64,000 bases of DNA from Bugula neritina (taxonomy: Eukaryota > Animalia > Bryozoa). Shown one piece after another: positions 410 through 43,799 of this stretch (position 1 is the stretch's first letter; each line of letters starts with the position of its first letter). The position numbers and the translations under genes are program-made. The stretch spans positions 2,695,751 through 2,759,750 of the forward strand of contig OZ037773.1 of NCBI GenBank assembly GCA_964035545.1, written 5' to 3'. The notes under the pieces are model-generated. The model worked only from the letters and a program-made list of their open reading frames with translations, was not told the DNA's origin and searched no databases.

Positions 410-3400
410 CAACATATAGCCATATGTAGCTGTTTGCATCAGACTTGAAAGGGTTTAGCAATTCTAGCACGCTGTCCAACTCTGCCTCTGATTTCGCAGT
501 AAAGAGACGTGCTCTATGCTGCTTGCAAGTCAATAAAGCCTTTTCCATGGTCATCAGCTCTTGTGAGCCAATGAAGAAACAGCGGCAGCCGTGTACACAA
601 AACCGAGGGGTTTTTCCACCATCAACAACTACTGGTTTTAAAGTGAAGTCCGGGTTTGCCAAACAGTTTCCTGGGAGAGCCAAAAAAATACCAATAGCTC
701 TAACACTTATAAGTACTTTAAAATAAATTAGGGTCATTTAGCTTAATTTAGTACACACTAATTATCTCTAGTTTTTAGCTGTTTTTCACAGTTTAGCTGC
801 TAATGTATGTAGTTTCTTGCATTAGACTGACAATTTTAATTTTAACAAATACAGCTGAATAAGCAAAGTTTTTCTTTTTAATTTTGCTTATTTTTTATGT
901 TTTACCCTAGTTTTTTAGTTAACTAGAGATATATAATTAGGTAAAATGACCCTTTAGTAATTAACTACAGGTTTTTAGCGAAACGTTTACTAGCTTTAAA
1001 AATGTCAAAATATTTGCATTTATTTCTATTCAAGCTTTTATCTTTGTTTATAAATGACATGCAGAGAAAAAGATACTTTAGACTGAGAGCACAAATTCTA
1101 CCTGCTTCGCACTTTTGTTTGAGGAGACAATGATCTTGCTCTGAGCACTTCCGTCTGCAAATTGTGGTTCCTGAAGAAATCTCAACACACTGTTGGTCAG
1201 GGGGACAGTTGAAGAGGCCCGAACGACATCTGAGGACGCAGAAACAACATTTATAGCAAACATCAAGAGACAGAACAAATTGGGAAAGCAACACACACCT
1301 AGTATGAGTTGAACCTTGAAGCATATTACATTACCAAATTAAGCATCAATAAAAAACCTGTTTAGTTTTGTTTTATATAACAACATGAAACTATTGAGCT
1401 ACACGTGTATAGTAGCATCTTCAACCTTTCTTAGTAACCTAGATTTCCCACATTAATAAGCTGAATCTCCAATAAAATGTTTTAGTGAACATGATAAATC
1501 ATGGAAATAGAATTTATATAAGACATTGGAAAACTATTACTATTCTTTCTATTTCTTCAAAACGTTTTTTCAGTATTTTTTCATATAGATTTCAATTGCA
1601 TACGCAGTGGTGCACTGGTTGAGTTCAGGATCACATGCTAAAGGAATGTTAGGATGGCAGTCTAAGCTTTTTCCAGGTTTACAGAATCCTGGACAGTCTG
1701 TATGGTCAGTACATTCTGCAAATAGTGACATCCTACATAGATATAGTTTTTATTATTGTTTAACTTTCTCTAAATTAATACATTATATACTTTAAAAGAA
1801 TAGTAATTGCTGGTATAAAACACCATGGTTTAATAAATAGAGATCTGCTATAAAATTTTGATCCAATCAACCTTCTGCCAAAAACAAAGTTTGAACCAAG
1901 TTGAAATGTCACTGTAAATAACCACACTGTTTGCAGCATGAATATGCATTAACAAAAATGTATTAAGGTGCCCTTTTCTTATTTTCAGTAACATAATATA
2001 ATGCAGCATATTTGTTCAAAAAAGTATAACCAGTCATTTCAAAGTTAGTTGTAAATAATTATTGCATCTATAATATAGTCTGTGGCATGCTTGCATAAAA
2101 CTTATGTATGAATTTTACTCAATTGTTAACATTGCAGTATCATAATTTTGTTGACTTTAGGTAAAAAGGGCACAGGTAAAAATTTCAAAGGTAAAAATGG
2201 AACAGGCAGTAATAACACAGGTAATAATGACACAAATTGAAAAGTAGGTAAAAATGACACAACTGCAGTTAACTTTTCCCTAATTCCCAAACGCTAAATT
2301 CAAACCCCCAACCCAAGCTTAAACCCCTCATACCAAATCCCCAAACTCCCACCCCAAACCCTAATAACAAATTTGTGCCAGTTTTACCTAATTTTCCATT
2401 TGTGCTATTATTACCTGTTACTTTCACTGACCACCGATATTGTTAGTAAACAAATAAAATAAACTGTTTGATTTATGTCAAACACTTACTGTTTTGGTAA
2501 AATGCTGTCTGCACGCTTACTATGAAATTTTTTCCACCTAAAATCATATTCCCTGTTTCTGGTAGCATCATCACTGATCTCAAGCCTTGGAGATGGCAGG
2601 TAAAAAAATTGGCTGTGTTTTTAAAAGATGGCGTTGCGATGTTCACAAGTTTTGTTGCCCCGCACAAAGATGTGACTCCGTTTTCCTTGATATTGTAAAG
2701 TCGCACAACTTGATCAATATGATCAGTGGCTATCAACATGTCATTGCTATACCAAAAGGCATCATAAATATCGTTATAACCGCTGCCTTGAAGTGTTCCA
2801 TCAACTGTGTAGTTTGCAACTCTGTTTCCAAGCACTTCCAGACTTTGACCAGTTGCCAAATCAATTTCCACCAAACTGTTTGCGAAAGTAAATAATTTGT
2901 TTCGAAGATCGTTAGTAAATATAACTTTACAGGCGGGGCATGCACCTATCAGTGAAGTAGTGTTTGTAGCAAAGTTTACTATCCGCAAAACATGTTTGTC
3001 AACAAATTCGGAAATAACAAGTGTGGTAGCCGTTAGCAAGACTCCTGATAATATTTGAGTAAACTGAGTTTGACCAAAGGCACCATTTACATACCCGCCA
3101 TCGGCGCACTTTCCAACTAACGTAGCCACGACTCCCGATCTACGGTTTGCATGGCGAATACAATGCGCTTCTAAAATATATAGACGGTAGAACTCGGGCT
3201 GCACCATGTCAACAATCTGTTTGAATCGGGCATCAGCTGTGACACCATCAATTGGCTTATCCGTTGAGAACCGACTGCCATAAATGTATCTAGGTACATT
3301 TTCACCTAATTTTAAATTTCCAACTGCCTTAGAATTTGCAAAGAGGATTTTTCCACGGCGATAGGAATCTCTCTGTATTGACACAATGTCTTCTGAAGGG

Positions 3401-3423: not shown

Positions 3424-5446
3424 CTGAAAATGTAGGCTACAAAAAAAAACATACACCCTGAATAATCAATTAAGAAAATAGTACTCCCAATAGTAATATG
3501 ATGTAGTATAACATTAATACAACAGTGACAACATATTATAATGATGAAGATGTAATATAGTAACAAATTAATACAATGTAACTGTTGATTTAGGGTAAAC
3601 TCTCTTACTAACACACTGCTCATGCTCACAACATTTCTAGGCCTCTAGCTCATTTCAGCGAAATAAATTATCTAACCGAATCTCTAACTTACAATTTCCT
3701 CTCCTACTATTTCATTCCAATAAGACACTCAACAAAACATTATGTTCTGTTTTATCTTCAAGCTTGGGTTTGTTGATATATACTGAGAAAAAATTGATAG
3801 CAAATAATTTGCACAGATGGGAAAAGAAAGTTGTTTGGTGCAAATCTCATTACCATTAGCAGGATGAACTTGAATACTTAAAAACTTTCTTGTAGTAACT
3901 TCGGTTTCACAATTCTTTATTTCAATCAATTATGCAATATTAGGAATTGGGTGACAATTCAAAATGAACTTATTTATACTACATGCAATAAGATCATGGG
4001 AAAATGCTCGTACAAATAACTATTCAAGTTTCATTCCTATTGCCAAGGTATTGCATGTTGCAGGTAATTCTACAAACAGCAAACTCTGTTTAATGTAGCA
4101 AAATCCTTACTTTTCCCACCCTATTGATAAATTACTTGTGAATAAATGGTGCCTTATTGTTGCAAAAAAATGTTCTAACCAAGTCTAAAATAATTTTTAT
4201 GAGAAAGAAACTTTCGCTATTATTGCTAAATGTTCTGATATACAGACAAATCAATTTTTCGTACCACCAATAAATTTAGTTTTGCTGTTAATTTGACCTT
4301 ACCTGTGAACTTGTGTTTTAATCACCAATCCAAAGTATATACTATGCATTATGATCGTGTGCAGCATCTGCAATATACAATCACAAAACAAATCTTTATG
4401 CTTGAAACATAAAAAATCTTTGTTTAACCGACTGAATCTTTAAGGCAAGAATAACAACCATCTATATACTCTATAGTGTGGCAGTTTGACCAACTTTCAT
4501 TCAAGAAATTGTCATTCTATTTTAAGACTGAACGACTGATAATTTTATAGCAAAGTTTTGAATCTCACAAATTCTTTCAAACAACACAATACTATCCTAA
4601 ATTTTTTTTTAATACATATGTTTGAAAACTTATTAGTGCTTTATTAAAAAATTAAATGAATATAAATGAAGCAACTACAAGCTTCTATAAGATATGTTCA
4701 TTATAAAGTTATTTTTTGCCTAGAAACATGGGTTATTAAAACAAAAAGATAGTATGAGAATTTCACAAATATGTCGTCTTACCAAAATATGTAGCCACTT
4801 TGTGATAACAGACATTTATATCCTTCTTCTTATTTTCAAACTCATTTCTTTTTGCACAAAAATTCATTACTCCACTCATTCACCGATTCATGATTGTCAG
4901 TAATTAGTAACTGTACAACAGTGACTGTAATTCTCACATTTGATTATGTCATCAAAACATTGTTATTCAGAAAGTTTTCATGTATAGACGTTATGATGAG
5001 CACAACATTGGTATTGAAGTGATTAAATATGTGTAACAATTTTAAAGTTTATTAAAGCTGATATATTTAAAAAAAAATCTAAGCAAACTTTTACATTGGT
5101 AGAATAATTATATTGAAAAAACCTAAATTATGGTGTCAGGTTTGCGTAGTAAAAGCAATATCTTTATTAAGTTTATATTGTAGAGAGTGTTTTATTGCAG
5201 TTCCAAATTTGATAACCTAATCTCAAAGTTTTGCAGTTCAAGTTTGTTAAAAATCTGCAATAAGTGTGTCATACACAAAAAATTACTGAAGTATCGATTT
5301 ATTACATAGTAATATAAAGCCAAGACATAAACAAAAAACCAGTTATTATTTACTAACACATTTTCAAGCATCATGATATTGTGGAGCTTTATAATAATAT
5401 TTATTATTAACTATTATATATATGTATTGTAGGTTCAGCAAAGACC

Positions 5447-5644
5447 GAGCAGCTGTGGTCTAGGGGTTAGAGCGTTTGCCTAGCAAACATGAGGTCATGG
5501 GTTCGAGCCCGGACAAAGGCCATTGGTAATGTTAGGAAGTGCATTCAGTCATAATTGCTCCTGTACCTCATTTAAATAAGTCCTTAGCTCGCTTTAACAA
5601 AAACCTTTTCCATCACAAGGATAGAAACGATAAACTTGCGTGAG
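5447..5644 (+). mobile_element. tRNA-derived SINE (possible Meta-domain SINE)
   Basis: Pol III A box (tggtctagggg) and B box (ggttcgagccc), then a conserved body ggccattggtgatgttaggaagagcatcc..cataattgctcctgt. Five copies in the window. Confidence 0.8.
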
Positions 5645-7078
5645 ATTTTTTTATAAGTTCAGCAAAAAAGAAAAACGATATAGTGACCAATTTACATTAG
5701 AAATATTGACGACTTGACACATACGAAACATAAGATTACTCCTGAAATTGAGGCACCAGTTAGCCATGGGTATCAACATTAATAAGAAAATGCCTGTTTA
5801 GGGTTAGGCCACCAGGGTCCTCGTACTTGTATAGAGAACTTGGCTTTATTATTCGGAGATTTGAATTTTATAGCCAGTAAACTCGGGTACAGGTCTCTGG
5901 CATTTGAGTAGAGTTTCTAGCTCATGTTAACTGGTTCCATTATGAGAATGAATGCTAGTATGAATGGATTTTTGGTTGACATTCAAATGAACTTACAGTA
6001 TGGTTGTGGTTTCAAACATAGAATAAAAATCTATCGGAATAATGAGATGCTTGGAAGCATAGTGATTGTTACAGATCACATTGCTGTAGATTTGCTCATC
6101 ACTATTATTTTTAGGAGGAGAAGTAGGAGAAGTCATTGAGTAGAAATGTCTCTTCCTAGCTGATGATGTACTAACAATATATATAGTAAAATGTTCACTG
6201 CTATAACAGTAGTTCAGTATCTACCAGTTCTGATTTAAGTTTCGCACAAGCTATCTCGGCTGTTGTAAAGATAACTCCTGTAATTCAAACAATAGACTTG
6301 TAGGTTTCACTTGTAGGACTGTCTATTCTTAAATGAATCTGCTAAAACCTCAGTTAACATCAGTAGGAATTAAACAAAGCAGTTATAGTTCCTACTTTTA
6401 GATTTTCCCAGTTTTTAATGAAAGGACAACTGCTATTCATCAGCACATATGATAGTTTGTTGCATATACTACTTGTAAGGTCTATGTTTTAAAAACTGAT
6501 TCTGAAAATCAATTTAGATCTTACAGAGATTAAAGTGCTAATTGCTCATTGTTAATTGCATGTTGATAATTGCTAATTATCCTAGTTACTTTATTTCAGG
6601 ATGGGAAAAAAGTCTGGGAAGAAATTCAAAACAATAACTCACATAGATTTAAAGCTAACAGATTGTGGTAGCCTACTGAGGCTGAGTACTTCTCATTTAC
6701 ATTCAGTATAGAGCATATATGCTAGCTTTATGCGATAAGTTTATATGAATTTGCTTTTTTATTAATAACTCATTATTTTCATTTTATATGTGCCTTTCTG
6801 TATTATCTATATAGCATTATTTAAAGAAAAATATTCATAGATACCTAAAATCTACAATTTTTTATATTTTCAATTTTTTTTTTTAATTATCAATGATCAT
6901 AATATATTTTTGATATTTATTATAGTTGCACCACCTTACTTGTTTTAGTTAACATATTAAATTATCAAGCAAATGTTGCCTATTTTATGAAAATCTAACT
7001 ACATATAAATATTTTGCCCCAGGTAATAGAATAGTAACAAATAAACCTAACAATTGAGTCTGTTTTAAAATGTTGCTT

Positions 7079-16200: not shown

Positions 16201-19200
16201 AGTAGTTATAAGATAGTAGAAGGTTATCATATACTTTAGTAGTGAATATGTAATGTAATATCAGCATTCATAACTCTAATTTCTTTTTATTTAAATAAAT
16301 ATTTTGTAAATTTTTTAATATGTGAAACTAACAATATATTCTTATAATTATTCCAAGGCAATCAGACTAAAACTACTGAATAGTTATATGTTTCAATATT
16401 TCAAGACAAATACTATTTAAAATAAACAATTGTAATTTCTTTTAAATTTAAACTGTCCATACACCACAACACTAGAACTTCATTTTTAAATTTATAGTTT
16501 AGAGTTGAAGAATTTACAGATAACATGCTTAATATATGCATGGTTGTATTTGATAGTATAGTGCATACTATTTTACTAGATCACCTTACACGCATTCATT
16601 ATATGGAACTTAATTAATAAAACTATAAGGCTTACTCTTCATCTCTGTTGTAGGAATAATTTTCAACATACTAAACATTGTCACACTTTCTATGTCGATA
16701 GAACAGGTTACATATAAAATACTTCTTGGAATGGCTGTTGCTGATTTATTGGTAGGAATTACTGGCTTTTCTCAAATAATTGTATTGTTTGTGTACATTT
16801 AAATAATACTTAGGGTTGTTGGTTGTAGTGTTAAGTTTACCCAGTGGTCCCCGTGGTATAATAGTTAGCACACTTGCTTGCAAGCCGGAGGCTCGGGTTC
16901 GATTCCCAGTGGGGGCAAAATGCATTTTACATTGGTCATCGAAATTTTAGTTTCTTACTAATAAAAAATTAAATTATGTGAAAACATTGTGAAAATGCCT
17001 TATTATTTCAACTTTTCACTACTGGGTCAATTTCTTGTCAACTTAATAACTACAATTTTCCATCTATGAAACCCTAAAACTTATCTATCATTGTGTTATA
17101 TATGATTAATCCAAACCTATTCAACAAGCTAGTCGCAGAGTTTAAAAGTATTATATCAATAGAATCAGCACGTAAACTAATTTATGTAATATTAAACCAC
17201 CTCTAAGAACTCTTGAGTAGGGTGAAGTTACAATCTTTTGAATAGTGTCGTTTTTAACAGATATAATTCGTGGTAATAACATCAAATATAATAAATATCA
17301 GACAGTTTATTGCTATTATTGAAGCTTTTTGGTGACATCAACTGCCTTAAAAAATCTTTATAACTCAGCTGACCTTAAATATTGAGCAAGTGCACAGAAA
17401 CTAGAAACAATGTTAAAAGAGCTATGCCCTGTGCCATTATTTATATGCATGTAATTATAGCAGAGAGTATACCTAACATCTAACAGGGAGCAGCTGTGGT
17501 CTAGGGGTTAAAGCTTTTGCCTAGTAAACACGAAGGTCATGGGTTCGAGCCCTGACAAAGGCCATTGGTGATGTTAGCAAGAGCATCCGGTCATAATTGC
17601 TCCTGTGCCTCATCTAAATAAGTCTTTAGCCCTTTCTCACAGGGATAGTGACTCTAAACTTGCGTGAGTATACTTAACATCTAATGATGCTAGTCATAAC
17701 ACTTTTACTTCTGTTATTATTCAAAGTTGTATTGTTTATTTTAGGTAAACATTACACTTTTCTGTTTATCTATAATTTTCCTGACACGCGCATACCCTGT
17801 CACAATCCAAGAATTAATGCAGTTTAATTTAACGGCCATTGTGATGAGGCTATTTGCATCCGTAAGTGATAATTTCTTACAAATCTTGAACAAGTTGAAA
17901 GCTACCAATTATTATTTTTCTAGTTCTTATACTACCACAAAGAAATGTTTAAAAAGCAAGCTTATTGAACACATCTATTTTACTAATCTATTACAGCAAA
18001 ATATTATTTTCTAGCATGAATAATTGCTAATAGCATGATTACTGTAGATATCTAACTGGAGTGCAGTGCTGATGGTTACCATTAGATTGCTAGTGGTTAC
18101 TTTCCCTCTAAAAGCTGCTATATTTGCCAGTCCCAGAAGAGTGAAAGTGTCTATTGGTTTGATTTACATACTCTGCATAAGTTTGCAGTTTTTGCTTTAT
18201 CCAATTGCAGTGTGAGTTTACTCAAAACTATAAATATGATGAAAAAATGAGTTAATAGACTTTATTTTGTTAGCAAATTTATTAGCTGAAGTACAGTTTT
18301 AAGTTATAGCCTTACAATATTTTTTTCATAAAATTTGTGAATTTGCAATCTACATGATTTCTAAAGCTTATACAAGTAAAATCTAAATAATAGTATTTAC
18401 ATTTTTAAGCAACACTGTGTAAGCTACTGCACATGTCTTTACCTGAATATTCATTACAAGGTGCAATTGCTGCAATTATACAATATAAAGTTTGCGTTAT
18501 TATAGATTTGCAAGTCCTTTAATTTTGACATGGCTGTTATATTTCCTTCCAATCTTATTTGAGATTTTACCAATGGCTGTGTGTTTGGTGCTGACGGTAA
18601 TGTTGCTAATACAGTTTCGTAGAAACCATGTTAAAGTTAAAGATTTAGTAAATCAGTAAGTATTACTCAATATATGATATGCTATATCGTCTTTTAGCTG
18701 TTTATGCAATAATATGTCTGCATTTTAATAATACTTTTCATTTATTATCAGAGCACATCTGGGTAAACGAGTAAAAGAACAGAGGATGTTGACCTTCACC
18801 TTGCTGCTGACCTTAACATTCTTCATTATAACCTACCTACCATTGGTAAAAAATTATTAAATTCCAAATTAAGCTTAAACATGATATGTGCATAAAGTAT
18901 AGGACAAAATAATACTGATTTCACTGTAATTATTACAAGTATCCCGCATATGCATAGAAAATCCACTATAATATCTGTTTTTTATATCAGTGTTGATTCA
19001 AATTGTTGAAATATATAACAGTTTCACTTTAATTATGTTGACTTTACTTTTACATATTATATGCAGCAGAAAATTATTTTTTAAAAAACTATTACCTGTT
19101 CAATGTATTGTTAAGAATGAGCTTTTTGTATTTTAAGTTATACTATTTACAGGTAATCTATAGCTTGATTGACCTTGCTAATATGAACATTATGAACGGC

Positions 19201-19713: not shown

Positions 19714-19758
<45 letters not shown>

Positions 19759-20033
19759 AATCTGTGGACAGCAGCTGTTTCGGGATTTGTCCCCTCATCA
19801 GCACAGAACAGAGTACCATGGCCCACACCTTCGCAATAGTAAAACTTATAGTTTTACTAAAGCATATTTAAAAGGTGTGTAAACTCAAGCCAGAGTGCTC
19901 AAGTGGCTCTAGGGGTCCCCTAGGAGTCACGAGCATTGCAAAATGCTAGCAGCTTGAGTTTGTGACCATGGTGAGAGTGCTCAATCATTTAATGTTATTG
20001 CTGAGCATTAAATGAGAGCGTAATATCTCAATC

Positions 20034-20119
<86 letters not shown>

Positions 20120-32516: not shown

Positions 32517-34426
32517 TAGACGAAAAATAAATAAAATCTATGAAGCATACCGATTATTCAAATTTTTACATAAAGAAAACTATATCATGCTAAACACAAC
32601 GTAAAACGAAATGCAAACATAGTAGTGGATTTGGTGTTATCTATTAATTAATTAAATTGCTCTTTTTCTAAAGGATTAGACTATAAAAGCTAGACGTTTG
32701 ATGGAAAGGGTAATTTATAATAGGTAGTACTACGGTTGAGAATTGTTAGTATTGTTATGTGATGTTGCCCAGGTAGTGCTTACGTGCATGTCTGCATGTG
32801 AATAGAATCTCATTTCTGTTATTAAGGGAAGATTTGCTGGGCTGGTATATTATGAAATATTTTTCCCATAGGCAGAGGTTGCACCTTTTAGTGACTTTGT
32901 TGTATGAGTTGGTCTTTTTCATAATTTTCCATGTTATGTCAAAATGGGTGTTCTTGTCTTTTAGTTTCCAAATATATTTGCTCAATTCAGTATGGTTCTT
33001 TTTTGTTTTGTTGTTAAAAGTTGATTTGTGGTTATACAATCTGGTTTTGAATTCTGTTTCTGATGTTCCCACGTAAGTCTGTGGTTGGCTGCCATCTTTG
33101 GTTGTAACTGTAGCTTGGTATATGATGCACTTTGTGAGGCATTTTCCATCTAGTGGGCACACTGTGCTGTTTCTGCAGTTACATTCTCGAGGAGGTTGGT
33201 TTGCTGGGTTGAGTAATCTTTGATTGTGGCTGTTGATTATGTTGTTTAAATTTCTGCAGCAGCTGTAACTGAGTTTTATGTTGTTTTTGTTGAAGATTTT
33301 GTAGAGTTTGTGATCTTTGGGTATTTCTTCCTCCAGGATTTTAAAAAAATTGTTTTCCCAGGTTGCTTGTTACACTTTTGGAGAATGGGGGGTTATACCA
33401 TGTGATGTTTCGTCGTCTTTCTCTTTTTGGTCTACTAGTGGTGTGTGTTGGCTGGAATGTTAGGTTATGTGTGTATCCACTTTTACTTAGAGCTTCTTGG
33501 TGTATTTTTGTTGTTTGACTGAAGACTTCTTCGTTAGATGAGAGATTGGAGAGCCTGTTGTTTATGGCATGTGGAATGTTTCTTGTGATATGGGGTGGAT
33601 GGTTGGATTTGGAGTTTACATATAGGATTTCGCTGTTAGGTTTTACATGGGGTTTGTGTGTTCTTTTGCTAATGTCAAAATTTATATCTAGATAGTTGAC
33701 GACCTTTTTGTTTACTTCAATGGTGATATTTAGATTATGTTTTTGGAAAATTTTGCAGATTGATTTTTTAATTCTATCTATATTTTTTGCAGTGTCGTTG
33801 ATTACTCCTAGGCCGTCATCACGGTATAGACCGAAGGTATTTCCAAACTTCTGGTTGATTTTATATAGTAAAAATATGCCGACCAGAGTGCAACATTCTG
33901 CACCGTCATAGCTGCCCATTGTAATGTCAAATAATGAGCCACATTTTTTACTCCAGGGTTGGCCGGAATGGTATAACAACATTTTTCTGGCATGGAAAAT
34001 CACGGTGCGGACTGTGTCTGTTATGGTGGTATGCTCTGCTGCGAAATCAATTGCAATGTGGAGTAATTTATTAGTTATTGACAGATAAAAGTCGACAATG
34101 TCAAATACAATAAAAGATAAGCATTTGTTGTTATCTAAATTTGTGAACCATTTAATTACCTCGGAAGTAACATCACATCACATCACATAACAATACTAAC
34201 AATTCTCAACCATAGTACTACCTATTATAAATTACCCTTTCCATCAAACATCTAGCTTTTATAGTCTAATCCTCTAGAAAAAGAGCAATTTAATTAATTA
34301 ATAGATAACACCAAATCCACTACTATGTTTGCATTTCGTTTTACGTTGTGTTTAGCATGATAGTTTTCTTTTTGTAAAAATTTGAATAATCGGTATGCTT
34401 CATAGATTTTATTTATTTTTAGTCTA

Positions 34427-34471
34427 ACACCTGACGAGTGCAGTTTACTGTACGAAACTATATAGTCGTGT
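34427..34471 (+). ncRNA. Type I hammerhead in PLE-B pLTR (intact)
   Basis: acac ctgacga gtgcagtttactgtac gaaa ctatatag tc gtgt read directly. Confidence 0.88.
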
Positions 34472-34616
34472 GAGATTTTTTAAATAAAAAAATATATATG
34501 TATCATTAACAATCTGAACACACTACATTATATTAGCTCTGTCACCTGTGATATCGAGCACTTTACTTTGCTGGAACTCCAACTAGATTGACAATCAGCA
34601 TACATTATATATATAT

Positions 34617-35132
<516 letters not shown>

Positions 35133-35141
35133 TGTATATAT

Positions 35142-37331
35142 AATGTAGTGTGTTCAGATTGTTAATGATACATATATATTTTATTTAAAAAATCTCACAC
35201 GACTATATAGTTTCGTACAGTAAACTGCACTCGTCAGGTGTTGGACTAAAAATAAATAAAATCTATGAAGCATACCGATTATTCAAATTTTTACATAAAG
35301 AAAACTATATCATGCTAAACACAACGTAAAACGAAATGCAAACATAGTAGTGGATTTGGTGTTATCTATTAATTAATTAAATTGCTCTTTTTCTAAAGGA
35401 TTAGACTATAAAAGCTAGATGTTTGATGGAAAGGGTAATTTATAATAGGTAGTACTATGGTTGAGAATTGTTAGTATTGTTATGTGATGTGATGTGATGT
35501 TACTTCCGAGGTAATTAAATGGTTCACAAATTTAGATAACAACAAATGCTTATCTTTTATTGTATTTGACATTGTCGACTTTTATCTGTCAATAACTAAT
35601 AAATTACTCCACACTGCAATTGATTTCGCAGCAGAGCATACCACCATAACAGACACAGACCGCACCGTGATTTTCCATGCCAGAAAAATGTTGTTATACC
35701 ATTCCGGCCAACCCTGGAGTAAAAAATGTGGCTCATTATTTGACATTACAATGGGCAGCTATGACGGTGCAGAATGTTGCACTCTGGTCAGCATATTTTT
35801 ACTATATAAAATCAACCAGAAGTTTGGAAATACCTTCGGTCTATACCGTGATGACGGCCTAGGAGTAAACAACGACACTGCAAAAAATATAGATAGAATT
35901 AAAAAATCAATCTGCAAAATTTTCCAAAAACATAATCTAAATATCACCATTGAAGTAAACAAAAAAGTCGTCAACTATCTAGATATAAATTTTGACATTA
36001 GCAAAAGAACACACAAACCCCATGTAAAACCTAACAGCGAAATCCTATATGTAAACTCCAAATCCAACCATCCACCCCATATCACAAGAAACATTCCACA
36101 TGCCATAAACAACAGGCTCTCCAATCTCTCATCTAACGAAGAAGTCTTCAGTCAAACAACAAAAATACACCAAGAAGCTCTAAGTAAAAGTGGATACACA
36201 CATAACCTAACATTCCAGCCAACACACACCACTAGTAGACCAAAAAGAGAAAGACGACGAAACATCACATGGTATAACCCCCCCATTCTCCAAAAGTGTA
36301 ACAAGCAACCTGGGAAAACAATTTTTTTAAAATCCTGGAGGAAGAAATACCCAAAGATCACAAACTCTACAAAATCTTCAACAAAAACAACATAAAACTC
36401 AGTTACAGCTGCTGCAGAAATTTAAACAACATAATCAACAGCCACAATCAAAGATTACTCAACCCAGCAAACCAACCTCCTCGAGAATGTAACTGCAGAA
36501 ACAGCACAGTGTGCCCACTAGATGGAAAATGCCTCACAAAGTGCATCATATACCAAGCTACAGTTACAACCAAAGATGGCAGCCAACCCCAGACTTACGT
36601 GGGAACATCAGAAACAGAATTCAAAACCAGATTGTATAACCACAAATCAACTTTTAACAACAAAACAAAAAAGAACCATACTGAATTGAGCAAATATATC
36701 TGGAAACTAAAAGACAAGAACACCCATTTTGACATAACATGGAAAATTATGAAAAAGACCAACTCATACAACAAAGTCACTAAAAGGTGCAACCTCTGCC
36801 TATGGGAAAAATATTTCATAATATACCAGCCCAGCAAATCTTCCCTTAATAACAGAAATGAGATTCTATCCACATGCAGACATGCACGTAAGCACTACCT
36901 GGGCAACATCACATAACAATACTAACAATTCTCAACCGTAGTACTACCTATTATAAATTACCCTTTCCATCAAACGTCTAGCTTTTATAGTCTAATCCTT
37001 TAGAAAAAGAGCAATTTAATTAATTAATAGATAACACCAAATCCACTACTATGTTTGCATTTCGTTTTACGTTGTGTTTAGCATGATATAGTTTTCTTTA
37101 TGTAAAAATTTGAATAATCGGTATGCTTCATAGATTTTATTTATTTTTCGTCTAACACCTGACGAGTGCAGTTTACTGTACGAAACTATATAGCCGTGTG
37201 AGATTTTTTAAATAAAAAAATATATATGTATCATTAACAATCTGAACACACTACATTATATTAGCTCTGTCACCCGTGATATCGAGCACTTTACTTTGCT
37301 GGAACTCCAACTAGATTGACAATCAGCATAC

Positions 37332-37333
<2 letters not shown>
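35142..37333 (+). mobile_element. PLE-B copy 2 (core on plus strand); hammerheads at 35197-35241 (-, intact) and 37155-37199 (+, U16.1C)
   Basis: ORFs 35667..36395 and 36509..36916; same 5' junction as copy 1; extra C in the C run near 36280. Confidence 0.92.
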
Positions 37334-37378
<45 letters not shown>

Positions 37379-37382
<4 letters not shown>

Positions 37383-37653
37383 AGGTATTATGCTCTCACT
37401 TAATGCTCAGCAATGACATTCAGTGATTGAGCTCTCTCACCATAGCCACAAACTCAAGCTGCTAGCATTTTGCAAGGCTCGTGACTCCTAGGTGACCCCT
37501 AGAGTCGCTTGAGCTCTCTTGGCTTGAGTTTACACACCTTTTAAATATGCTTTAGTAGAAACATAAGTTTCTACTATTGCCAAGGTGTGGGCCATGGTAC
37601 TCTGTTCTGTGCTGATGAGGGGACAAACCCCAAAACATGCTGTTCACAGATTG

Positions 37654-37658
<5 letters not shown>
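37379..37658 (+). mobile_element. Retrozyme monomer, subfamily 2
   Basis: As 34787-35065. Confidence 0.85.
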
Positions 37659-37719
<61 letters not shown>

Positions 37720-37728
37720 TGTATATAT

Positions 37729-39917
37729 AATGTAGTGTGTTCAGATTGTTAATGATACATATATATTTTATTTAAAAAATCTCACACGACTATATAGTTT
37801 CGTACAGTAAACTGCACTCGTCAGGTGTTGGACTAAAAATAAATAAAATCTATGAAGCATACCGATTATTCAAATTTTTACATAAAGAAAACTATATCAT
37901 GCTAAACACAACGTAAAACGAAATGCAAACATAGTAGTGGATTTGGTGTTATCTATTAATTAATTAAATTGCTCTTTTTCTAAAGGATTAGACTATAAAA
38001 GCTAGATGTTTGATGGAAAGGGTAATTTATAATAGGTAGTACTATGGTTGAGAATTGTTAGTATTGTTATGTGATGTGATGTGATGTTACTTCCGAGGTA
38101 ATTAAATGGTTCACAAATTTAGATAACAACAAATGCTTATCTTTTATTGTATTTGACATTGTCGACTTTTATCTGTCAATAACTAATAAATTACTCCACA
38201 CTGCAATTGATTTCGCAGCAGAGCATACCACCATAACAGACACAGACCGCACCGTGATTTTCCATGCCAGAAAAATGTTGTTATACCATTCCGGCCAACC
38301 CTGGAGTAAAAAATGTGGCTCATTATTTGACATTACAATGGGCAGCTATGACGGTGCAGAATGTTGCACTCTGGTCAGCATATTTTTACTATATAAAATC
38401 AACCAGAAGTTTGGAAATACCTTCGGTCTATACCGTGATGACGGCCTAGGAGTAAACAACGACACTGCAAAAAATATAGATAGAATTAAAAAATCAATCT
38501 GCAAAATTTTCCAAAAACATAATCTAAATATCACCATTGAAGTAAACAAAAAAGTCGTCAACTATCTAGATATAAATTTTGACATTAGCAAAAGAACACA
38601 CAAACCCCATGTAAAACCTAACAGCGAAATCCTATATGTAAACTCCAAATCCAACCATCCACCCCATATCACAAGAAACATTCCACATGCCATAAACAAC
38701 AGGCTCTCCAATCTCTCATCTAACGAAGAAGTCTTCAGTCAAACAACAAAAATACACCAAGAAGCTCTAAGTAAAAGTGGATACACACATAACCTAACAT
38801 TCCAGCCAACACACACCACTAGTAGACCAAAAAGAGAAAGACGACGAAACATCACATGGTATAACCCCCCATTCTCCAAAAGTGTAACAAGCAACCTGGG
38901 AAAACAATTTTTTTAAAATCCTGGAGGAAGAAATACCCAAAGATCACAAACTCTACAAAATCTTCAACAAAAACAACATAAAACTCAGTTACAGCTGCTG
39001 CAGAAATTTAAACAACATAATCAACAGCCACAATCAAAGATTACTCAACCCAGCAAACCAACCTCCTCGAGAATGTAACTGCAGAAACAGCACAGTGTGC
39101 CCACTAGATGGAAAATGCCTCACAAAGTGCATCATATACCAAGCTACAGTTACAACCAAAGATGGCAGCCAACCCCAGACTTACGTGGGAACATCAGAAA
39201 CAGAATTCAAAACCAGATTGTATAACCACAAATCAACTTTTAACAACAAAACAAAAAAGAACCATACTGAATTGAGCAAATATATCTGGAAACTAAAAGA
39301 CAAGAACACCCATTTTGACATAACATGGAAAATTATGAAAAAGACCAACTCATACAACAAAGTCACTAAAAGGTGCAACCTCTGCCTATGGGAAAAATAT
39401 TTCATAATATACCAGCCCAGCAAATCTTCCCTTAATAACAGAAATGAGATTCTATCCACATGCAGACATGCACGTAAGCACTACCTGGGCAACATCACAT
39501 AACAATACTAACAATTCTCAACCGTAGTACTACCTATTATAAATTACCCTTTCCATCAAACGTCTAGCTTTTATAGTCTAATCCTTTAGAAAAAGAGCAA
39601 TTTAATTAATTAATAGATAACACCAAATCCACTACTATGTTTGCATTTCGTTTTACGTTGTGTTTAGCATGATATAGTTTTCTTTATGTAAAAATTTGAA
39701 TAATCGGTATGCTTCATAGATTTTATTTATTTTTCGTCTAACACCTGACGAGTGCAGTTTACTGTACGAAACTATATAGCCGTGTGAGATTTTTTAAATA
39801 AAAAAATATATATGTATCATTAACAATCTGAACACACTACATTATATTAGCTCTGTCACCCGTGATATCGAGCACTTTACTTTGCTGGAACTCCAACTAG
39901 ATTGACAATCAGCATAC

Positions 39918-39919
<2 letters not shown>
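37729..39919 (+). mobile_element. PLE-B copy 3; hammerheads at 37784-37828 (-, intact) and 39741-39785 (+, U16.1C)
   Basis: ORFs 38254..38916 and 39095..39502; near-identical to copy 2; period 2587 bp. Confidence 0.92.
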
Positions 39920-39962
<43 letters not shown>

Positions 39963-39966
<4 letters not shown>

Positions 39967-40237
39967 AGGTATTATGCTCTCACTTAATGCTCAGCAATGA
40001 CATTCAGTGATTGAGCTCTCTCACCATAGCCACAAACTCAAGCTGCTAGCATTTTGCAAGGCTCGTGACTCCTAGGTGACCCCTAGAGTCGCTTGAGCTC
40101 TCTTGGCTTGAGTTTACACACCTTTTAAATATGCTTTAGTAGAAACATAAGTTTCTACTATTGCCAAGGTGTGGGCCATGGTACTCTGTTCTGTGCTGAT
40201 GAGGGGACAAACCCCAAAACATGCTGTTCACAGATTG

Positions 40238-40242
<5 letters not shown>
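39963..40242 (+). mobile_element. Retrozyme monomer, subfamily 2
   Basis: As 37379-37658. Confidence 0.85.
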
Positions 40243-40299
<57 letters not shown>

Positions 40300-40308
40300 T
40301 GTATATAT

Positions 40309-42497
40309 AATGTAGTGTGTTCAGATTGTTAATGATACATATATATTTTATTTAAAAAATCTCACACGACTATATAGTTTCGTACAGTAAACTGCACTCG
40401 TCAGGTGTTGGACTAAAAATAAATAAAATCTATGAAGCATACCGATTATTCAAATTTTTACATAAAGAAAACTATATCATGCTAAACACAACGTAAAACG
40501 AAATGCAAACATAGTAGTGGATTTGGTGTTATCTATTAATTAATTAAATTGCTCTTTTTCTAAAGGATTAGACTATAAAAGCTAGATGTTTGATGGAAAG
40601 GGTAATTTATAATAGGTAGTACTATGGTTGAGAATTGTTAGTATTGTTATGTGATGTGATGTGATGTTACTTCCGAGGTAATTAAATGGTTCACAAATTT
40701 AGATAACAACAAATGCTTATCTTTTATTGTATTTGACATTGTCGACTTTTATCTGTCAATAACTAATAAATTACTCCACACTGCAATTGATTTCGCAGCA
40801 GAGCGTACCACCATAACAGACACAGACCGCACCGTGATTTTCCATGCCAGAAAAATGTTGTTATACCATTCCGGCCAACCCTGGAGTAAAAAATGTGGCT
40901 CATTATTTGACATTACAATGGGCAGCTATGACGGTGCAGAATGTTGCACTCTGGTCAGCATATTTTTACTATATAAAATCAACCAGAAGTTTGGAAATAC
41001 CTTCGGTCTATACCGTGATGACGGCCTAGGAGTAAACAACGACACTGCAAAAAATATAGATAGAATTAAAAAATCAATCTGCAAAATTTTCCAAAAACAT
41101 AATCTAAATATCACCATTGAAGTAAACAAAAAAGTCGTCAACTATCTAGATATAAATTTTGACATTAGCAAAAGAACACACAAACCCCATGTAAAACCTA
41201 ACAGCGAAATCCTATATGTAAACTCCAAATCCAACCATCCACCCCATATCACAAGAAACATTCCACATGCCATAAACAACAGGCTCTCCAATCTCTCATC
41301 TAACGAAGAAGTCTTCAGTCAAACAACAAAAATACACCAAGAAGCTCTAAGTAAAAGTGGATACACACATAACCTAACATTCCAGCCAACACACACCACT
41401 AGTAGACCAAAAAGAGAAAGACGACGAAACATCACATGGTATAACCCCCCATTCTCCAAAAGTGTAACAAGCAACCTGGGAAAACAATTTTTTTAAAATC
41501 CTGGAGGAAGAAATACCCAAAGATCACAAACTCTACAAAATCTTCAACAAAAACAACATAAAACTCAGTTACAGCTGCTGCAGAAATTTAAACAACATAA
41601 TCAACAGCCACAATCAAAGATTACTCAACCCAGCAAACCAACCTCCTCGAGAATGTAACTGCAGAAACAGCACAGTGTGCCCACTAGATGGAAAATGCCT
41701 CACAAAGTGCATCATATACCAAGCTACAGTTACAACCAAAGATGGCAGCCAACCCCAGACTTACGTGGGAACATCAGAAACAGAATTCAAAACCAGATTG
41801 TATAACCACAAATCAACTTTTAACAACAAAACAAAAAAGAACCATACTGAATTGAGCAAATATATCTGGAAACTAAAAGACAAGAACACCCATTTTGACA
41901 TAACATGGAAAATTATGAAAAAGACCAACTCATACAACAAAGTCACTAAAAGGTGCAACCTCTGCCTATGGGAAAAATATTTCATAATATACCAGCCCAG
42001 CAAATCTTCCCTTAATAACAGAAATGAGATTCTATCCACATGCAGACATGCACGTAAGCACTACCTGGGCAACATCACATAACAATACTAACAATTCTCA
42101 ACCGTAGTACTACCTATTATAAATTACCCTTTCCATCAAACGTCTAGCTTTTATAGTCTAATCCTTTAGAAAAAGAGCAATTTAATTAATTAATAGATAA
42201 CACCAAATCCACTACTATGTTTGCATTTCGTTTTACGTTGTGTTTAGCATGATATAGTTTTCTTTATGTAAAAATTTGAATAATCGGTATGCTTCATAGA
42301 TTTTATTTATTTTTCGTCTAACACCTGACGAGTGCAGTTTACTGTACGAAACTATATAGCCGTGTGAGATTTTTTAAATAAAAAAATATATATGTATCAT
42401 TAACAATCTGAACACACTACATTATATTAGCTCTGTCACCCGTGATATCGAGCACTTTACTTTGCTGGAACTCCAACTAGATTGACAATCAGCATAC

Positions 42498-42499
<2 letters not shown>
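40309..42499 (+). mobile_element. PLE-B copy 4; hammerheads at 40364-40408 (-, intact) and 42321-42365 (+, U16.1C)
   Basis: ORFs 40834..41496 and 41675..42082; period 2580 bp. Confidence 0.92.

Positions 42500-43799
<1,300 letters not shown>

Follow-up and report, generated by a model that had tools for sequence, protein, structure and literature searches.

How the hammerhead ribozymes of animal retrozymes and of Penelope-like elements (PLEs) take part in retrotransposition is a question for which circular RNA templates have been proposed but remain unproven. A single retrozyme insertion in the 64-kb stretch of Bugula neritina DNA that was analysed here (hereafter the window) raises this question in a concrete form, namely what kind of RNA was copied into the chromosome when the inserted DNA reads straight through the predicted cut of its own ribozyme. 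The metazoan non-LTR retrozymes were defined by Cervera and de la Pena (2020, PMC7229834), who reported circRNAs in three phyla, proposed that a primed circRNA gives rise to tandem cDNA, and named PLEs as candidate mobilisers; that study came without mapped insertion ends, and the target-site duplications, when present, were longer than 4 bp. Pseudo-LTRs, 30–40-bp tails and (TA)n targeting have been described for PLEs, with the role of the hammerhead being called unclear (Craig et al., 2021, PMC8557442), and a 2026 preprint derives animal retrozymes from PLE pseudo-LTRs and likewise proposes PLEs as their mobilisers (bioRxiv 10.64898/2026.07.22.740005). A full-text literature search found no paper mapping retrozyme insertion ends. 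Rolling-circle copying of retrozyme circles is known already, as a hypothesis (PMC7229834); the new element of the present work is the mapping of the ends in this family, where more than 400 young insertions have ends that are readable to the base. These insertions point to cleaved linear RNA not being copied, to one fixed start at the foot of the ribozyme with (TA)n DNA as the primer, and to 5′ ends that are formed via microhomology. The question can now be reduced to defined experiments on which enzyme, which form of the RNA and which start-site nucleotides are involved.

Retrozyme copies in the window

Unit numbering in this work starts at the first base 3′ of the predicted hammerhead cut. 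The insertion at positions 19752-20034 of the window (minus strand; locus L001, 1500-1782) is a single copy of 283 nt that was read from the sequence as unit positions 4-270 followed by 1-15. It consists of one 270-nt unit with a repeat of unit 4-15 (AGATTGAGATAT) at both ends, the second copy of which forms the 5′ terminal redundancy at 20023-20034 (minus strand). A minimal type I hammerhead was predicted by direct reading at 19756-19808 (minus strand), with its cut between 19767 and 19766; the sense 3′ end lies 15 nt beyond this point. Tracts of (TA)n, the target sequence, lie on the 3′ side of the element (19716-19755) and on its 5′ side (20037-20119). At the 3′ junction with (TA)n stands the AUAU of unit 12-15 (19752-19755, minus strand), the putative priming site as judged from 407 genomic 3′ ends and from the predicted fold, in which it is single-stranded at the foot of helix I.

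Four copies of an older subfamily (91% identical) are present on the plus strand. The first of these, at 34787-35065, comprises unit 6-270 plus 1-15; the duplicated copies 2, 3 and 4 are located at 37379-37658, 39963-40242 and 42551-42831, and all four carry a 10-nt redundancy, ATTGAGGTAT. They ride a 2.59-kb segmental tandem duplication with flanks that are 99% identical, and are therefore non-independent and were counted as one event. Copy 4 stands tail-to-tail, across a 118-bp (TA)n, with an array on the minus strand at 42951-43686, which starts (5′ end) at unit 90 and has predicted cuts at 42965|42966, 43235|43236 and 43505|43506. Its units are mutually identical, with 0 differences in 662 compared positions. 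The initial annotation had described this array as 2.7 units long at 42953-43685, and the present reading of 2.73 units agrees with it. All six copies in the window have one common 3′ end.

Two further features of the window were recorded. The region 33500-43000 is built of about four tandem repeats of the 2.59-kb unit at 98-99% identity, with some segments inverted, and this repeat unit includes the older retrozyme copy together with the (TA)n flanks of that copy. At 16847-16917 (plus strand) there is a weak tRNA match of 29.7 bits, barely above the gathering score.

A predicted type I hammerhead in a non-coding unit

Read in the sense direction, the hammerhead is ordered as the 5′ strand of helix I, CUGAUGAG, helix II, GAAAC, helix III, GUC and the 3′ strand of helix I (unit 1-11). 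The GUC is followed by CACAGATTGAGATAT and then by (TA)n. In the 19752-20034 copy the core CUGAUGAG ... GAAAC ... GUC, including a UH cleavage triplet, can be read intact, and the 3′ half of the motif is kept in 490 copies of the genome, in keeping with the earlier claim that the hammerhead is preserved in the DNA. Helix I has 5-6 bp plus 3 bp, unit 2-6 and 9-11 pairing with 225-234 in the predicted circular fold. Helix II is GGGG/UCCC, in which the substitution U252C of the older subfamily converts a G.U pair to G-C. Helix III has just 4 bp with a 3-nt loop, is palindromic (CAGCUG), and is weak as a monomer. Neither the gathering score nor E values up to 10 brought a match between the hammerhead of the window and the Rfam model (RF00163), and no hammerhead was found when the genome was scanned with this model, 73 of 16,234 candidates being scored; it is the conserved core and the helices that support the ribozyme call.

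The unit of 270 nt has a GC content of 43% and is non-coding, the longest stop-free stretch being 44 codons. Its predicted circular fold has an energy of -98.2 kcal/mol (z = -7.8), with 68% of the positions paired. It occurs both in tandem, in arrays of up to four units, and dispersed, and it combines a type I hammerhead and a low GC content with the lack of LTR, PBS, PPT and ORF that is characteristic of metazoan non-LTR retrozymes. At least 470 copies bear the hammerhead, and the element very probably belongs to this metazoan type, as a young and non-coding retrozyme with a unit of 270 nt.

3′ ends across the genome

Genome-wide pattern counts were made in the 216-Mb assembly, and the reversed-pattern controls gave 0 throughout. 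The 3′ half of the hammerhead was found in 490 copies, of which 465 continue with the 15-nt tail CACAGATTGAGATAT. A total of 407 copies show the 3′ half, the tail (CACAGATTGAGATA after the cut) and (TA)3 in succession, while at 65 internal junctions the tail runs on into the next unit. None of about 110 inspected copies terminates at the cut. Among 20 hammerheads that lack a perfect tail and were examined as exceptions, 10 are 2 nt shorter (CACAGATTG followed by ATAT...), and the remainder differ by point changes, except for L035, which has an internal deletion; a 3′ end at GUC occurred in 0 of the 20. All 70 of the whole-unit matches that were scored extend to the 3′ end of the query. Two further TA tetranucleotides occur in the unit, at 171 and 188, and serve as the 3′ end 0 and 1 times, respectively, as compared with 407 for the AUAU of unit 12-15. 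The 3′ end is fixed and highly specific genome-wide. The initial annotation had proposed such a fixed end past the cut, as opposed to ends at the cut or at random, and this proposal is upheld at a distance of about 15 nt beyond the cut. The choice of one AUAU (407 against 0 and 1) goes beyond what microhomology would give, and needs either a recognition step, which is hypothetical, or an inherited 3′ end.

A 2-nt shift in register is seen at about 15% of the 3′ junctions. Locus L021 is instructive in this respect: it carries a private CATAG variant at either end, in the 5′ redundancy as well as in the 3′ tail, but the shift is confined to the tail. The shift was hence made at priming and not inherited, which argues against a simple inherited (UA)n tail.

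Two unusual ends were noted. The sole copy found with its 3′ end at the TATA of unit 188 is located at G000:C2:22503338-22503364 (minus strand). In L035 (372-560; G000:C1:13636471-13637290), the hammerhead plus 6 nt is fused to unit 152 at an AG microhomology; this joint is an internal deletion or a template switch.

5′ ends, lengths and junctions

The first 30 loci were obtained with a whole-unit query and over-represent full units. For the 5′ ends, 60 places were picked by the 3′-end pattern only, in genome order, resulting in 65 arrays. Lengths in this 65-copy sample are continuous from 22 to 548 nt: 46 copies (71%) are shorter than 262 nt, 12 measure 262-290 nt and seven are longer. There are peaks at 1.0 and 2.0 turns, and three copies of 542-548 nt are almost exactly two units long. 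The expectation of the initial annotation that lengths would as a rule be n x 270 nt plus a fraction is contradicted by this distribution, and its description of a single insertion as one unit plus 10-12 bp holds for the single copies of the window (12 or 10 nt) but not as a rule for the family. A fixed 3′ end combined with a variable 5′ end is what target-primed reverse transcription characteristically leaves behind when its products are truncated at the 5′ end.

The upstream (TA)n is clean at 42 junctions. Microhomology of at least 1 nt was present at 38 of them (expected 28.5%, p = 6e-17) and of at least 2 nt at 21 (expected 6.7%), and at the microhomology junctions the first bases of the element keep the TA phase of the upstream (TA)n. 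The hot spots for 5′ ends are the three TA tetranucleotides of the unit. Among the molecules that arrive at these sites, the rate of stopping is 59% at the one-turn site versus 5-9% at the other TA sites. Stubs of 22-23 nt are recurrent, with their 5′ ends at unit 263-264 in the loop of helix III, which suggests that the folded ribozyme hinders the enzyme.

Insertions are flanked by (TA)n, inside which target-site duplications are unreadable. The 12-nt redundancy was considered as a candidate target-site duplication and was rejected, its sequence being identical at every locus and belonging to the unit. Dispersal purely by DNA duplication was also rejected, as the flanks are unrelated except in the four plus-strand copies of the window.

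Locus L102 (G000:C2:33416992-33420159) has two one-unit copies, at 1246-1521 (plus strand) and 1588-1862 (minus strand), which stand tail-to-tail 66 bp apart in one (TA)n and have two rare variants in common (37T and 115T). A single template may have given rise to both insertions, or the pair may result from an inverted duplication. A different small hammerhead element lies between (TA)n tracts at L113 (703-990, minus strand; G000:C9:2978000-2979700). Its ribozyme is central, and this second hammerhead family is uninformative on the 3′-end rule.

Probable target-primed copying of RNA continuous across the cut

We consider it highly probable that (TA)n microsatellites are the sites into which the retrozyme is copied by target-primed reverse transcription, on a template RNA that is continuous across the cut. 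For the priming chemistry, we infer that the 3′ end of a nicked (TA)n would pair with the single-stranded AUAU (unit 12-15) immediately 3′ of helix I, and that cDNA synthesis would then proceed 3′ to 5′ back over the cleavage site. A template on which synthesis crosses this site would have to be uncleaved or re-ligated RNA, and never the cleaved linear monomer. Synthesis may stop anywhere, whereupon the end of the cDNA would join the upstream (TA)n via 1-5 nt of TA microhomology. Stopping would be strongest where the enzyme, having completed exactly one or two turns, meets the AUAU/hammerhead region again, which would produce the class of insertions with a unit plus 4-12 nt. A primer that reaches 2 nt further, with G11 mismatched and A10 paired, would produce the 2-nt-shorter junction.

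As read from the DNA copies, the template is covalently continuous across the self-cleavage site, because GUC|CACAG is seamless in 465 of the 490 copies and because 5′ ends at unit 1 and run-off stubs are lacking: in 338 kb of inspected sequence there was no 5′ end exactly at unit 1 and no stub starting at the cut. A cleaved linear monomer cannot produce 407 identical 3′ ends 15 nt past the cut together with a seamless GUC|CACAG, and on this point the initial annotation was correct. Its further claim, of a circular or multimeric template, stands with regard to the continuity across the cut. The picture of reverse transcription running once round a circle goes beyond what the insertions show, since most copies are 5′-truncated and shorter than one turn, and stopping at the AUAU/helix I region, where TA microhomology meets the folded hammerhead, accounts for the one-turn class.

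Form of the template

Two physical forms of a continuous template have to be weighed, and we regard them as about equally probable, each at somewhat less than an even chance; both may be used. In the first, the main template would be a monomeric RNA circle of 270 nt, the product of double hammerhead cleavage followed by ligation, which would be copied for a fraction of a turn, one turn or several turns. In the second, uncleaved transcripts of genomic arrays would be the main templates, with initiation at the AUAU after any hammerhead and with no circle. It should be cautioned that circularly permuted DNA copies alone are no proof of circles.

A rolling circle accounts well for the homogeneity of the arrays. 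Young arrays are internally identical (0 differences in 981 compared positions in L012, in 870 in L005 and in 662 in the array of the window) and differ among themselves, the divergence being 0.94% within arrays versus 2.26% between them, and lineage variants are common to all of the units and the tail. Linear multimers fare less well in this regard, because arrays copied from them can only shorten in each generation, and homogeneous arrays of three to four units with private variants need another process. The copies form a star-like tree in which siblings are very rare, as would fit if truncated and single copies were dead on arrival. The small number of sibling sets counts against the copying of genomic arrays, as does the finding that none of 30 non-TA upstream flanks showed a 5′ transduction of the flanks of a master; the same 30 flanks contained no longer element sharing the 3′ module of the retrozyme. 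The predicted circle is very stable, as given above, and the lack of 5′ ends at unit 1 and of stubs from the cut also agrees with it. Furthermore, circRNAs of such elements have been shown in coral, mussel and axolotl, and the model itself has been proposed before (PMC7229834). The peaks at exactly 1.0 and 2.0 turns speak for circles too, although pausing at the folded hammerhead, together with the AUAU microhomology, explains the one-turn peak just as well.

Direct support for linear multimers came from a pair of sibling copies. L070, which is only 57 nt long, has the rare variant 249C in common with L014, an array of 2.2 units that carries it in its first, incomplete unit; among about 115 sampled hammerheads, 2 had this variant. 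The two loci also have one 5′ end in common, and their unique flanks are unrelated. Judging from these variants, the simplest reading is that a linear transcript with heterogeneous units, such as one resembling L014, was primed at its first internal AUAU to give L070. In addition, the arrays L016, L027 and L014 have unit-specific patterns of variants that are impossible to obtain from one circle. The weakness of helix III, with 4 bp and a 3-nt loop, predicts poor cleavage of single motifs, and minimal hammerheads with a palindrome of the CAGCUG kind are reported, for amphibian motifs, to be efficient in cleavage only as dimers (PMC7229834). A 3-kb PLE of the same genome, which is described below, has equivalent ends past the cut, and by analogy this favors the linear form over the circle. 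The uncleaved linear multimer had been named by the initial annotation as the competing template; L070 and L014 give it substance, but they do not decide against the circle.

The four-unit array L016 (G000:C8:7936530-7937617) deserves separate mention. Its three internal junctions all have 263G/10T/19A, and its terminal tail and 5′ start are of the consensus type. This pattern is predicted neither by copying of one circle nor by simple inheritance, nor by any simple model, and template switching or later recombination may have produced it.

The RNA evidence consists of assembled Logan contigs, in which ends, strand, circularity and level are not readable and DNA carry-over is possible. With that proviso, RNA-labelled runs contain the unit. 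One contig of 220 nt from an oligo-dT library spans the cut 43505|43506 and can be counted on the side of the linear multimer, and one random-primed run has a very high summed word depth for the unit. RNA that spans the junction is not diagnostic of circles because every DNA copy already has the junction. The loose end of one RNA contig maps to a locus without a nearby retrozyme, and is probably due to a polymorphic insertion or a contig chimera. Among the sequencing runs X1-X4, X8 and X20, the unit was also encountered in runs labelled as symbiont metagenome and biofilm metagenome.

A SINE-like linear master is improbable. According to this alternative, the RNA would naturally end with the hammerhead plus 15 nt, followed by a (UA)n tail handed down through read-through transcripts, priming would take place inside the (UA)n, and the redundancy would be a feature of the master. 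Its merits are that the 407:0:1 choice of site would be explained without a recognition step, and that the tail is always followed by (TA)n. On the other hand, about 15% of the 3′ junctions are shifted by 2 nt and the internal version in L021 is without the shift, some copies (L021, L081 and those on the plus strand of the window) repeat their private variants at both ends, arrays reach four units with peaks at whole turns, and L070 needs initiation at an internal junction that no (UA)n follows. Cleaved linear monomers that are primed at AUAU, run off at the cut and are extended by a jump onto the 3′ end of the next monomer, in the manner of the end-to-end template jumping that is a known property of non-LTR reverse transcriptases (the R2 enzyme), are extremely unlikely to have been the templates, as 465 of 490 junctions are seamless, the 338 kb of inspected sequence held 0 run-off stubs of 15 nt ((TA)n-CACAGATTGAGATA-(TA)n) and 0 5′ ends at unit 1, and even the shortest stubs extend across the cut, as far as 263-264.

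Comparison with known systems

Among known systems, the element is close to the metazoan non-LTR retrozymes (Cervera and de la Pena, 2020, PMC7229834). Both have a non-coding low-GC unit of about 270 nt with a type I hammerhead, occur as monomers to short tandem arrays and coexist with PLEs, and a model in which target-primed copying of RNA gives tandem cDNA is proposed for both. They differ in that the ends have been mapped here, with a 3′ end 15 nt past the cut, strict (TA)n targeting, mostly 5′-truncated copies and microhomology junctions, and in that circRNA was seen in the earlier work whereas the Bugula neritina element was read from DNA and contigs. PLEs with pseudo-LTRs and a tail (Craig et al., 2021, PMC8557442) are similar in having a hammerhead near the 3′ end, a (TA)n bias, a short extension that repeats the sequence after the unit, and head-to-tail partial tandems. 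Unlike these PLEs, the retrozyme is without an ORF, and its tail is only 11-15 nt with a single site.

Insertions of the L1 type and the partnerships between SINEs and LINEs also have a fixed 3′ end, a variable 5′ end, microhomology at the 5′ junction and a non-autonomous element that depends on the enzyme of another. In the retrozyme, however, initiation is internal to the RNA and not at poly(A) or the 3′ end, and the template is repetitive or circular, so that products can exceed one unit. The plant LTR retrozymes (PMC4918200) resemble the present family as non-coding RNA retroelements that are bounded by hammerheads; they differ in their type III hammerheads, LTR/PBS/PPT, Gypsy-type mobilisation and 4-bp target-site duplications, none of which is found here.

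A Penelope-like element as candidate mobiliser

The mobilising enzyme is most likely the reverse transcriptase/GIY-YIG endonuclease of a PLE. A candidate in partial tandem was located at L119 (G000:C3:12294500-12301500), with ORFs of 624 and 707 aa, the latter at 3663-5786. The 707-aa ORF has YRDDG, a cysteine-rich CxxC linker and a C-terminal VIY...YIG motif. This ORF had no Pfam domain in a local scan, even with the threshold relaxed to E = 10. A search of the genome with the Pfam GIY-YIG model retrieved an SLX1-like gene only and no PLE. Its Atlas neighbours and 2,403 homologues, the nearest named of which is from the bryozoan Watersipora, carry PF26215, PF28514, GIY-YIG and sometimes RVT_1. 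We read the L119 element as an intact PLE of about 3 kb, an identification that is based on motifs read by eye, on the Atlas neighbours and on the domains of the homologues.

The internal junction of this PLE is seamless through the hammerhead cut. The element terminates at TA-rich sites 45 or 126 nt downstream of its own cut, which are followed by (TA)n and once by (CA)n. Locus L116, from the same family, which counts about 290 first-look candidates, has a hammerhead, about 41 nt and then (TA)n. An intact PLE with the same anatomy as the retrozyme, that is with a (TA)n target and a 3′ end past the hammerhead, is therefore present in this genome. With regard to descent, a blastn comparison of the unit dimer with L119, the one PLE family compared, gave no match at E values up to 1. 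The two elements share only the short motif TTGAGCACTCT, which is of doubtful significance, and their hammerheads differ.

Rather tentatively, and as a possibility that we would at present bet against, it can be proposed that the hammerhead and the adjoining AUAU might form an initiation module that is read by a Penelope-like reverse transcriptase. Self-cleavage would part the priming site from the body of the RNA, re-ligated circles or never-cut RNAs alone would be licensed for copying, and arrays would be rolling-circle products made at a chromosomal nick. If true, this proposal would assign a definite function in retrotransposition to the hammerheads that PLEs and retrozymes carry, which have long lacked an explanation.

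Some minor observations were made on the PLE sequences. The string TTGAGCAC(T/C)... is present at 3556 and 3635 of L119, in the 5′ region of the PLE, and at unit 54 and 136 of the retrozyme; for a match of 12 nt the chance expectation is about 0.1. In the inverted pairs of the PLE family, each arm uses one of the two alternative end sites. One copy of the family, at about position 993 of L120 (G000:C2:17722500-17729000), ends in (CA)n rather than (TA)n.
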